Below are positions 13,267 through 18,517 of a DNA stretch of 64,000 bases, piece after piece; position 1 is the first letter of the stretch; each line of letters starts with the position of its first letter. Under the pieces are notes generated by a model. That model saw only the letters and a list, made by a program, of their open reading frames with translations. It was not told the DNA's origin and did no database searches. The stretch is from Syncephalis fuscata S228 (Eukaryota; Fungi; Zoopagomycota): NCBI GenBank assembly GCA_025786725.1, contig JAHLTZ010000012.1:248001-312000 (forward strand). The letters run 5' to 3'. The position numbers were made by a program, and so were the translations under genes.

Positions 13267-14412
13267 CTATTGTCGACCACATCGCTCTTTTGTGCCATCA
13301 GTCAACATCCAAGCGGGATGATAGTCTTCCTCAGGTGTTGTTGATCGTAATAAAGCGGGATTTCTATGTGTATTATTAATGCCATCTAATGAAGTAAATC
13401 TATAGCGATGATAATGATGATATACAAGTTAGTATTGCATTTGTAGGTTGATAATATAAGGCTAAATTGGTCATTGCCCGTGTGTATTTACCCATAGTCG
13501 TATAGAATACAGTAAGGAACGCTACATTCACGTAGATATGTCCAAATATCGGTGTAGCTCCAGTCGAGAATCGGATGGACGCGCATGAATGCCGGCCAGC
13601 CTGCATCGGTTGATTGAAATGCCGTTAATGTTTCTAAATAAACTAATTAACGAGGATAATAGTATTAGTGGTCAAAAGGCTTACCGGCATATGGATCGGT
13701 ACGTCGTGTACCAATAAGAATTGCTTTAACGTGTGGATAAGCTGTCGCGAACTTTTCAAGACCAGTACGCATTGAGCCTTGTTTGCGACAAAGCTGTAAA
13801 CCAAATTTGCGTGCAAATTGCTCAGTAAATGCATCAACCTGCGGAAATGGCTCACAAGCACATACATAAACGGCTGGTACCTGTGCTTCATGTAACTGTG
13901 CCACAATATCTTTATCTGTATTGCCTGTCTTGCGCAAATGCCGCATTACAACTGCAGTCCATAAATGCAATAGCACAGTACAATCTTTACCGCCATTAAA
14001 GCTTACGGCGACACCATTGAGTCTATAAGTGCATGCAGCGTTATTTCGTTAGCTATTCGGCTACTAATTATACTATTTAATATATAGCTATATAGCGCTT
14101 GGCAATTATTACTTACCCATAGCGATCGATTGCTTCTTCAATTATATTTAGTGCCTCTCTTACTCGTTCGGAAAGATGGGACGATATTGGCGATGCGTTT
14201 ACGTGATACTGGGCCTTTTCATAGGCACTACGCTCGACTTGTAGTAAGCATACAGACGATAGATTACCATTGGAGACGATCATGCTGTCATTTAGCTTTG
14301 CTAACGGTAACTCTGAACCTGAATTCGCTGTAGACGAGCTTGCATCGTTACTAAGCATATCTGTGCTTGACGGACTTGATTGATAGGGATGTTTTAGAGA
14401 TGAAGGTGACAT
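13267..14412 (-). CDS. FAD1: FAD synthetase (PAPS-reductase family)
   Basis: [16 protein letters not shown]; [12 protein letters not shown]; [19 protein letters not shown]; [16 protein letters not shown]. Confidence 0.92.
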
Positions 14413-14672
14413 AGCGCACAATTGCAGTAGCAATTATTTAAAATAACAAATCCAGGGGCAAATACTAGCTTGTCCACTGTAATAGGTACAAGAATAGAAA
14501 GGTTAAACTGTTTAACAGTTATAATGACGGTAGTGTTTACGTGGTAAATAAAAGAATCGAGTTAGAATAGCGTAACTAAAGTTAATAGAAGGAGAAAAAT
14601 GGCATGTGAATCAAAACATAAATATTTTAATTCATCGTTATTTATTATGTCCTACCAAAAATACGATGGCAT

Positions 14673-16172
14673 TTACTCGGCATTAAATGCCGGTGGCGCA
14701 TCGGTCGCCTCATTCATTACTTCGTCTTCGTGGCTGCTTGCCCTGTCGCCATTCTCGGCCGACCGGTGCTCGCTACGGCTATGATTGCTAGGCGAGCGAG
14801 AGCCACGACGTGGGGAAGGAGAGCGCGAGTCACGACGGCGTGTTGCTATCGGTGAACGAGATCGAGAGCGGGAATGGCGCCGGGGGGATGGCGAGCGGCT
14901 ACGTACAGGTGAGCGAGAGTAGCGACGGACGGGTGAACGAGAGTGGCGGCGAACGGGTGAACGGGAATAGCGGCGAACGGGCGAACGCGAGTAGCGACGC
15001 ACAGGTGATCTAGAACTACTACGGCCACGACCGCCATAACCTCTACCACGATCATCATCGCGGCGACGGCCATAACGTCGAGGGGACCGAGATCGGGATC
15101 GGGAATAATAGCGGCCACGCGAACGTGAACGTGAACGTGAGCGGGACCGACTCCTAGTGACAAATAAATTATTATTGTTAATTAATTATTAATTAGATTA
15201 CTCATCCGACCCCATAATTATAATAGCCGTTTATAATTAATAATATTTACCTGTAACGACGACGTGGTGAACGCCCACCGCCTCGTCGACTCGATCGTCC
15301 TTCGCGGTCACGCATTTCGTGCGGCGCTATTAATAACACATAACGTCAAGACCGATAATCTACTAACCATATGCCAGCTATTGCCATTGCAACTTACTTT
15401 TACGAGCACCTTTGGCCCATTCAACTGTCAATGTGCGGCCATTCAAATCAAAATTCTCCATCTTATCATAGGCAGCATTCGCATCGCGTTCCTCGTGAAA
15501 TCTAAATAAATAACAACATCCAGGCTAAGGACATTAAATGCTAATACTAAACACACAACAGCATATTTGCTTATCGTTCAACAATAAACTCTAATTGTTC
15601 TATTCACTTCCCCTCCCATCTCTCCACTTAATGCATGCTACTACATCGCAATATATCAACTATTGCGTAAAAGGCAGCATACAACCCAAGTGAGGATACA
15701 CAGTGCCTTGGCGATCCCACTTGTTTTGTAGCCTGCACTGAGCTTGTTATACCGCGCTGATACTTGTCAACCACCATTAACGCAGCGCTTGCCCATCGCT
15801 TTATGCTGTTAGTCTTTAACGCACTCTCGCACTACTTGAAGGATACTGGATATAGGCGAATCCGCGAATTTCTTTTGAGTAGTAATCTTTGGGCAAATAC
15901 ACTATAGAATAAAGATAGATAGAAGTAGAAATATACAAAGAAAGTGCAGCGTGAATTACGCAGTGTTAGACTGACTAGCACTATAATAGCGTAGTGTATA
16001 TACCGCGTACCATCCTTGATCTTTCCATGTTTCTCAAAGGCTTTCTCCAGATCCTCGGCTCTATTACAGCAGGTAAATCATCGGCTGTGTTGTCTGTACC
16101 GCGCTATTTACCTAGTAGATTTGTCGAGATTGCCTACATAAATAGAGGGACATTGCCCTCTCCGCGCGGCAT
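14673..16172 (-). CDS. SR splicing factor, single RRM plus RS domain (SRSF10/SRSF12/SCL-like)
   Basis: Spliced RRM SIYVGNLDKSTRAEDLEKAFEKHGKIKDVYLPKDYYSKEIRGFAYIQFHEERDA..VEWAKGARK, followed by RS/RSP repeats. ATG 16172 needs a 1-nt correction to be in frame. Confidence 0.9.
14906..15001 (-). repeat. Coding 24-nt tandem repeat, (RR[Y/H]SRSPV)x4
   Basis: Seen in the translation of ORF 14673..15002. Confidence 0.85.
15502..15846 (-). other. Putative U12-type (minor spliceosome) GT-AG intron, 345 nt
   Basis: 5'ss GTATCCTTC; branch-like TCCTTAGC at 15531-15524, ~22 nt from the AG; phase 2 within the Q codon of RGFAYIQ|F. Confidence 0.8.
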
Positions 16173-16629: not shown

Positions 16630-18517
16630 ATGGTGTTGTTATATTCGCGTTATTCCGCTGGGGTGTTACTAGGCCATGGTGCAAAGTACCAGCGTGCCAC
16701 TTCTTCCTTTTCTTCAATACGTTCCTTGCTAACCACGCGTTTTATATATTGTGTCAGTAGTAAACGTGCCATAAACACGACGATATCTACGCGTTTAACA
16801 AGCAACAGCGATAGCAACACAAGTATCATGTCAGCATCAACTGATAACCAACCAAAGATCCTTAAGTGGGCCTCCAAGGATGGCGAATTCCGTCGACAGC
16901 AATCCAGCTTCCGTGATTTCGTATCAAAGGACCCAAATGCAAAATTTGTAGCCGAAAAGTAAGCTATTTAGTGTTAGAGAATAAGCTAAACTACTTACTA
17001 CTACCATTGAAATGATTATTTATTACAATAGAGATCGCTATCATCTTTATGTGAGCTATGCTTGTCCATGGGCCCATCGTACACTTATTGTACGAGCTCT
17101 AAAGAACTTGGACTCAATCATTAGTGTATCAGTAGTTGATGTAAGTAATAAATACCTATAAATACCTATAAACGACTATAGATAACAGTAATTAATCTAT
17201 TTATTTGCTTATCTATTCTATGTTAGTATCTATTGCAAGATAAAGGCTGGAAGTTTACTGATCCATCCGAGACACCAGGTGCCACGTTAGATCCTATCAA
17301 TAACGCACAATATCTGCGTGAAATCTACTTTAAAGCCAATCCTGAATACTGCGGTATGTTGTATTATAAAACTGATGTTACTTAACTAATAATTGATACA
17401 TATATGTGTGTGTGTGTGTGTGTGTATATAATAGATCGCTTTACTGTACCAGTACTATGGGACAAAAAAACAGAAACCATTGGTAGGTTGTAGCATAGTT
17501 AGCAAATATAATTATCCAATTAACAATATACATTGTTTTAATAGTTAGCAATGAAAGCTCCGAAATTATTCGCATGTTAAATACTGAATTTAACGAACTT
17601 GTTTCGGAAAAGTGTGAGGTTGATCTTTATCCAAAGGAACTGCAATCACAAATCGATGAGATGAATACGTGGATCTATGATACTGGTAATTAGATCATTG
17701 TAGTCTTAATTCAACTAACAACCTATCATATCTTTAGTTAATAATGGTGTATACAAGGTTAGCCATTAATAATATTAAGCACTATTAATACAAACGCAAT
17801 ACTAATACCAATACTATTTACTGTTACTAATAGTGTGGATTTGCTACTACCCAAGAAGCTTGTACGTATATAATAGCATTATATATTCCTATTACTATTC
17901 TATTCATATCTAACTATATATTTATATTAGATGAAAATAATTGTGGACCATTATTCAAGTCACTCGATAGAATTGAAGACATTTTATCCAAAAATAAATT
18001 TTTATTGGGCACTCAACTGACCGAGGCTGATGTTCGTCTTTGGACTACTATTATTCGGTAGGATATAATAGACTAGATGATTGTTTGTTACTGACCTATT
18101 TATTGCTATGTTCACTATTTAGATTTGACCCCGTCTATCATGGTCATTTCAAGTGTAATGTAAAGTCAATTGAAAAGGACTATCCACACACTCTTCGTTG
18201 GGCCCGTCTAATCTATCAATTACCTAAAGGTAAGCTAACTAGTCACTTATTTATTAATACGTCCATTAATATTTCCACAACGCATATTAATACACCCCAT
18301 GTTTTGTATAGTGGCCGAGACTGTGAATATGACGCATATCAAACGCCATTATTATATGAGCCATCTCCAGATCAATCCTACCGGCGTGGTACCACTCGGC
18401 AATGGCCCAGGTAAGTGAAATAGTGCCACATGAATAGACACGTTGAACTAACACGATATCAACACGGCACGGGTTTGTGTTATGTTACAAGATCTATCGG
18501 CACCTATCGGCAACTAA
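16630..18517 (+). CDS. ECM4: Omega-like glutathione transferase / glutathionyl-hydroquinone reductase (Ecm4/YqjG family)
   Basis: [12 protein letters not shown]; [18 protein letters not shown]; [10 protein letters not shown]; [16 protein letters not shown]; [13 protein letters not shown]; [25 protein letters not shown]; second in-frame ATG at 16828. Confidence 0.92.

Follow-up and report, generated by a model that had tools for sequence, protein, structure and literature searches.

The closest described counterpart of the gene examined here is mammalian Srsf10, in which the intron that lies between exons 2 and 4 is an AT-AC minor intron and serves autoregulation (Meinke et al. 2020, eLife, PMC7244321). 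Among fungi, Zoopagomycota keep minor introns and minor snRNAs and Dikarya have none (Larue and Roy 2023, NAR, PMC10639083); minor snRNA components have also been described in Zoopagomycota by Olthof et al. (10.1101/2022.10.12.511939). The SRSF10 intron is not named in the text, or in one supplement, of the survey by Larue and Roy, and the literature on minor introns in plant SCL or SR45a genes yielded nothing relevant.

The DNA analysed here is a 64-kb stretch, referred to throughout as the window. For a 451-amino-acid subtilase frame within it, the named proteins that match best come from Syncephalis pseudoplumigaleata (57%), Thamnocephalis sphaerospora and Syncephalis fuscata; given these matches in Syncephalis and Thamnocephalis, we assign the genome to a Zoopagales fungus. 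A first-pass annotation of the window had held that some early-diverging fungi retain the minor spliceosome and that Dikarya lack it, which agrees with the Zoopagales matches taken together with the published survey (PMC10639083). The window contains a gene for an SR protein whose third intron has the signals of a U12-type (minor) intron. In the following sections we describe this gene and its introns, compare their positions with those of animal-like SRSF10 genes, and consider how intron 3 may be spliced and where it may have come from.

Structure of the SR-protein gene and signals of intron 3

The gene lies on the minus strand and encodes one N-terminal RRM followed by an RS tail; six exons were read, from 16172 to 14673. 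Exon 1 (16112-16172) reads ..QCPSIYVGNLDKST- and includes RNP-2 (SIYVGNL), and intron 1 (16061-16111; 51 nt, GTAAAT...AATAG) interrupts an Arg codon in phase 2. Exon 2 (16011-16060) encodes AEDLEKAFEKHGKIKD and is separated by intron 2 (15902-16010; 109 nt, GTACGC...TATAG) from exon 3 (15847-15901), which encodes VYLPKDYYSKEIRGFAYIQ and holds RNP-1; the full RNP-1 motif, RGFAYIQF, spans exons 3 and 4. Intron 3 (15502-15846), the intron with U12-type GT-AG signals, is 345 nt long and in phase 2. The second half of the RRM (FHEERDANAAYDKMENFDLNGRTLTVEWAKGARK) is encoded by exon 4 (15398-15501; 104 nt), after which come intron 4 (15327-15397; 71 nt, GTAAGT...AATAG), of U2 type and in phase 1, and exon 5 (15251-15326), which reads TPHEMRDREGRSSRRGGGRSPRRRY-. 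Intron 5 (15154-15250; 97 nt, GTAAAT...CACTAG) is again of U2 type, and its removal restores the frame with an Arg codon, AG|G. Exon 6 (14673-15153) encodes the RS-rich C-terminal domain, 159 codons and a stop with RS and RSP repeats. Exons 2 to 6 are all open and have canonical sites at their joins.

The 5' end of the gene is less regular. Just one ATG lies nearby (16172-16170), offset by one base from the frame of the RRM, and none lies in frame upstream of SIYVGNL; with an extra base in the GGG/CCC runs at 16158-16147, the sequence would read MPRGEGQCPSIYVGNL. The frame problem (16172-16134) looks like an assembly homopolymer error, a non-AUG start or a real lesion. By their ORF translations alone, the neighbours are, upstream and in divergent orientation (16630-16962, plus strand), a Xi/omega-type glutathione transferase-like gene and, downstream (13665-14433, minus strand), a FAD synthase-like gene with a motif of 13 residues.

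The gene is single-copy in the genome. Protein searches were run exon by exon, which limited the retrieval of orthologues. Exon 4 matches C-terminal RRM halves in PDB, and searches of PDB and the ESM Atlas with parts of the gene gave no name beyond 'RRM'; against the whole library, the 34-residue exon 4 query found multi-RRM proteins only and no orthologue. The matches of exon 6 were all to other SR proteins and came from the RS repeats, and its C-terminal tail without those repeats gave no match as a query.

Intron 3 separates exon 3, ending ...CGC GGA TTC GCC TAT ATC CA, from exon 4, beginning A TTT CAC GAG, and thus splits a Gln codon (CA|A) between RGFAYIQ and FHEERDA. Its 5' splice site, GTATCCTT (15839-15846), matches all eight positions of the U12-type consensus and has C at both +5 and +6, where the four U2 introns of the gene have G/A/G/A and T/T/C/T, respectively. 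The branch-site motif TCCTTAGC (15524-15531), in the context AATGTCCTTAGC, is the sole U12 branch-like motif in the intron. It departs from TCCTTRAY at one position, with G for the second consensus A, and this mismatch counts against a U12 reading; in pairing with U12 the first A can still bulge, and a G·U pair remains. The 3' splice site is the first AG after the branch motif (15502-15503), and the junction is fixed by homology to animal F[DE]D.RDA. The distance from branch motif to intron end is 22 nt including the terminal AG, with no other AG or AC between; this is among the longest spacings accepted, and the corresponding spacing in the other U12 introns of the genome is 9-17 nt. Alternative donors and acceptors near the ends of the intron break the reading frame: GTAGTG, for example, 11 nt past the donor, adds 11 nt.

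These signals are also complementary to snRNA candidates found in the genome. The donor GTATCCTT is complementary to the 5' end of U11 (AAAAAGGG) and to the AAGGAGAGA box of U6atac, and the branch context AATGTCCTTAGC forms a predicted 9-bp duplex (-11 kcal/mol) with UAAGGAUAU of the U12 candidate.

The first-pass annotation had described a 345-nt intron at 15502-15846 with this donor and branch motif, in phase 2 at RGFAYIQ|F, and every one of these features is present there. It had also found the donor at no other intron of the window, in keeping with the single occurrence of GTATCCTT in the 64 kb. Its figure of ~50-80 nt for neighbouring introns proved too narrow, as the other introns of the gene measure 51, 109, 71 and 97 nt, but all are indeed far below 345 nt. 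The donor motif needs to be interpreted cautiously: the degenerate form RTATCCTT occurs three times in the window against 5.5 expected by chance, and the remaining two matches (51200 and 54754) are without intron features. As the donor motif is not significant by itself, the weight of the assignment lies on the homology-fixed junction together with the branch-site motif.

Intron positions in animal-like SRSF10 loci

We scanned metagenome contigs with a degenerate DNA pattern that joins GFAY[VI]Q to RTATCCTT, and found 89 loci where about one was expected by chance. In 88 of these 89, an SRSF10-like RRM half lies upstream and ATATCCTT directly follows ...RGFAY[VI]Q. The next exon, which starts F[DE]D.RDAEDA, could be located in 50 loci. 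The introns so resolved are 547-3437 nt long and have CTTAAC 9-12 nt before the 3' end; 49 of the 50 end in AC and one in AG. The contigs carry no organism names, and we take the loci to be animal because their introns are long. Their assignment to SRSF10/12 is our assumption, based on the vertebrate sequence and on the literature on the Srsf10 minor intron. By their motifs, the 88 animal-like introns are AT-AC U12 introns at the codon and phase of fungal intron 3.

Several further observations concern the animal-like loci themselves. One locus (L070) has an AT-AG form of the SRSF10 minor intron instead of AT-AC. In two others (L055 and L096), the 26-residue peptide before ATATCCTT is identical to what we take to be the vertebrate one; these are possibly human or other mammalian DNA, or contamination, and were set aside after the first listing and left out of further analysis. 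In a large group (L027, L030, L039, L041, L043, L044, L060, L104 and others), a conserved ATATCCTTGAAAYTCAGGTAGCA..CCTGATG follows the minor donor; it brings a stop into frame as the third codon and forms a short inverted repeat (CAGGT/ACCTG), and a purine-rich GAGAAAGGAAAACTTAAC precedes the branch site. Both ATATCCTTGAAAYTCAGGTAGCA..CCTGATG and GAGAAAGGAAAACTTAAC are candidates for conserved regulatory elements in the animal intron.

The correspondence between the fungal and the animal-like genes extends beyond the minor intron. The exon that follows it is 34 codons long in both and gives way to the next intron at a|gtaagt (after ..GDRK in the animal-like genes and ..GARK in the fungus), so that fungal intron 4 and the length of exon 4 are those of the animal SRSF10-like genes. 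Fungal intron 1 shares its Arg codon and phase with the upstream intron of most animal-like loci. Intron 2 is absent from the animal-like genes, in which the flanking exons are continuous. Three shared intron positions (introns 1, 3 and 4) and the shared length of exon 4 make the fungal gene structurally orthologous to the animal-like genes, and support their common descent. It has both the RRM and RS domain architecture of the SRSF10/SRSF12 subfamily and the gene structure common to the animal members.

Two points raised by the first-pass annotation can thus be answered. It had placed a minor intron of vertebrate SRSF10 at the equivalent position, which is borne out by the 88 loci with ATATCCTT after RGFAY[VI]Q and by the published mammalian gene (PMC7244321). 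It had also proposed that intron positions be compared with those of SRSF10, and in this comparison introns 1, 3 and 4 coincide in both codon and phase.

Minor-spliceosome components and other U12 introns of the genome

The machinery was sought in the genome's own 29.4-Mb assembly with Rfam and Pfam models, with only pre-filtered candidates scored for snRNA. A U11 snRNA scored 47.5 bits (Rfam cut-off 39) and has the 5' sequence AAAAAGGG, an AUCAAGA loop and an Sm site; a U6atac snRNA scored 37.8 bits (cut-off 33) and has the AAGGAGAGA box and a U-tail. The U12 candidate is full-length, with an intact branch-binding GAGUAAGGA and an Sm site, but at 34.6 bits falls below the Rfam cut-off of 53, a low score that we attribute to insertions. 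Two proteins of the U11/U12 particle were found above their Pfam cut-offs, namely PDCD7 (U11/U12-59K; 29.2 bits) and SNRNP25 (25K), through its ubiquitin-like domain (Ubiquitin_4; 38.1 bits). For U4atac, the Rfam model at a relaxed E-value gave only a 21-bit partial match in this assembly, and three patterns built from the U6atac pairing regions (segments AGUUGGCG and CCCCCUGGGCAAGGACGGG) gave no credible candidate; as only pre-filtered candidates were scored, the missing U4atac is not evidence of absence.

The minor snRNA candidates (L001:1501-1672, L003:1501-1682 and L002:1501-1660) are all larger than the Rfam models. The U11 candidate has an insertion of ~55 nt in stem-loop I, the U12 candidate two insertions of ~20 nt each, and the U6atac candidate ~27 extra nt in its middle part.

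We searched the same genome with the pattern RTATCCTT-N20-100-TCCTTRAY and obtained 20 matches, compared with three in a reversed control. About 17 of the matches are unique, and nearly all of these have the appearance of genuine short introns; most are AT-AC, and at least two GT-AG cases are credible. Their 3' ends lie 9-17 nt after the branch motif. Identical matches occur on the contig pairs C24/C359, C328/C371 and C184/C350, which points to duplicated stretches in the assembly (haplotigs or redundant contigs).

The commonest branch context among these introns (L007-L025) is ATCCTTAAC, in ~10 of 16. The A before TCCTT in this context pairs with the U that the U12 candidate has after AAGGA, a position at which A is the Rfam consensus. 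This covariation between snRNA and branch site supports the U12 candidate, and the A/U pair is an apparent compensatory change between the U12 snRNA and its targets. One of the introns (L016) has the branch context AATGTCCTTA, which is that of the SR-gene intron. Intron 3 and the other U12 introns of the genome share the same donor and branch consensus and differ in other respects: the others are mostly AT-AC, 50-110 nt long and with a spacing of 9-17 nt, whereas intron 3 is GT-AG, 345 nt long, has a spacing of 22 nt and carries the G in its branch motif.

Of the U11/U12 machinery, which the first-pass annotation had expected to be functional in this organism, a large part is thus encoded in the genome. 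U11 and U6atac exceed their cut-offs and the 59K and 25K proteins are present; U12 is full-length but below cut-off, and U4atac was not found among the candidates scored.

Probable splicing and descent, and possible regulation, of intron 3

Taken together, the shared position and the complementarities described above make it highly probable that intron 3 of this Zoopagales SRSF10-family gene is an inherited GT-AG U12-type intron that is removed by the minor spliceosome. The U11/U12 di-snRNP would bind the donor GUAUCCUU through the 5' end of U11, and the GUAAGGAUAU sequence of U12 would bind the branch region AUGUCCUUAGC. U6atac, with its AAGGAGAGA box, would then displace U11 from the donor, and the 3' splice site would be the first AG downstream of the branch site. 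That the intron is in fact spliced, and that this depends on U12, we infer from the known mechanism of minor splicing together with these complementarities.

If intron 3 is retained, translation continues through QYPSSSARVR to a stop, 10 codons in and inside the RRM. As retention truncates the RRM, synthesis of the SR protein should depend on minor-spliceosome activity.

Being orthologous to the animal AT-AC minor intron, intron 3 probably goes back to the ancestor that fungi and animals share, and has had its terminal dinucleotides switched. AT-AC to GT-AG is a known kind of subtype switch among U12 introns. The retention of an ancient minor intron, as proposed in the first-pass annotation, accordingly gains from the codon and phase shared with 88 animal-like U12 introns and from the presence of the machinery in the genome. 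A minor intron common to animals and this fungus at one codon implies that the dependence of the regulator on the minor spliceosome is probably more than 1 billion years old.

Intron 3 is three to seven times longer than the other introns of the gene and than the other U12 introns found in the genome, and this length, together with some internal motifs, hints at regulation. It contains a second U12-like donor, GTATCCTC (15692-15699), a 7-mer whose chance of occurring in 345 nt is ~0.04. The only good U2-type donor is GTATGC (15682; intron position 165), itself a weak candidate, as is GTAGTG (intron position 12). A U2-type branch consensus (CTRAY) occurs just once, as part of an ACTAAC-AG (15806-15813), 34-41 nt after the donor, and 26 of 30 positions are purines in a stretch at 15600-15629, a value reached by 88 of 5000 shuffles (P ~ 0.02). 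The GTATCCTC donor, the ACTAAC-AG and the purine-rich stretch are candidate elements.

It is possible, but we consider it doubtful, that the intron doubles as a splicing switch, in which such internal sites would compete with the productive U12 splice and lead to isoforms carrying a stop, on the model of mammalian Srsf10. The unusual length and the four internal elements (the GTATCCTC and GTATGC donors, the ACTAAC-AG acceptor and the purine-rich element) speak for a switch, as does the mammalian precedent, whose competing sites and GA-rich enhancer, to which the protein binds, the fungal motifs recall (PMC7244321). The case is weakened by several results, however. The intron contains no AATAAA or ATTAAA, and the ACTAAC-AG lies too near any upstream donor for the two to be used jointly; the animal introns show no enrichment of internal U12-like donors, with eight observed against 11 expected; the intron has no Rfam match, and its predicted fold is no better than that of shuffled sequences (z = -1.4). 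For lack of that enrichment (eight against 11 expected), we rejected the second internal U12 donor as a conserved feature. A hidden RNA or structure in intron 3 was also rejected, as no Rfam family matched and z was -1.4 against shuffles.

A broader proposal is that the coupling between SRSF10 and the minor spliceosome, described only in mammals, dates to the animal-fungus ancestor, with the long fungal intron a working switch; we regard this as decidedly doubtful. If it were true, the sites at 15699, 15682, 15813-15806 and 15629-15600 would be expected to yield stop-containing isoforms at high levels of the SR protein or at low minor-spliceosome activity.

Intron 3 might be spliced by the major (U2) spliceosome now, with its U12-like motifs being relics of, or a stage in, a minor-to-major conversion. 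Such conversion is a known route. It is also discussed by Olthof et al. (10.1101/2022.10.12.511939). The GT-AG termini would fit a converted intron, as would the imperfect branch motif, unusually far from the 3' end compared with the other U12 introns of the genome, and the T-rich tract (GTTGTTATTTATTTAG) and TTAAT near the 3' end. Nevertheless, the donor fits all eight positions of the U12 consensus, unlike those of the four U2 introns of the gene; the sole CTRAY lies at the 5' end of the intron, the branch region and the U12 candidate are predicted to form a 9-bp duplex, and the genome has minor machinery and other U12 introns. On this evidence we consider a conversion to U2-type splicing improbable. 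That the gene is decaying or wrongly modelled, and 'intron' 3 not removed at all, agrees with the lack of an in-frame ATG in exon 1 but is very improbable, given that exons 2 to 6 are open with canonical joins, three intron positions and the length of exon 4 match the animal genes exactly, the gene is single-copy, and the start-codon problem would be accounted for by a single-base error within a homopolymer.

An inherited U12-type intron, spliced out by the minor spliceosome, is the reading that we carry into the comparison with known systems. The presence of a same-codon minor intron in an early-diverging fungus concerns the one SR-protein gene that is known in mammals to be gated by the minor spliceosome, and makes intron 3 a concrete conserved case for the question of why minor introns, most of which are lost, persist in a few cases. 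At 345 nt, it also offers a short natural version for minigene work.

The picture that Zoopagomycota keep the minor spliceosome is left unchanged by this finding, and the pattern reported for the group by Larue and Roy (PMC10639083) fits the present genome. U12 introns and their machinery were thus already known in Zoopagomycota; what is new is the positional identity of the fungal intron with the animal SRSF10 minor intron.

In relation to mammalian Srsf10 (PMC7244321), the two genes differ in the termini of the intron, which are AT-AC in mammals and in the animal-like loci (AT-AG in one) and GT-AG in the fungus. They differ also in its length, which is 547-3437 nt in the animal-like loci, and in its content: the mammalian intron contains a competing major donor and an alternative exon 3 that ends at its own poly(A) site, whereas in the 345 nt of the fungal intron the candidate donors are weak and neither AATAAA nor ATTAAA occurs. 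The fungal gene and mammalian Srsf10 nevertheless belong to a common gene family; the match in codon and phase is seen in 88 animal-like loci, and in both genes retention of the intron truncates the RRM.
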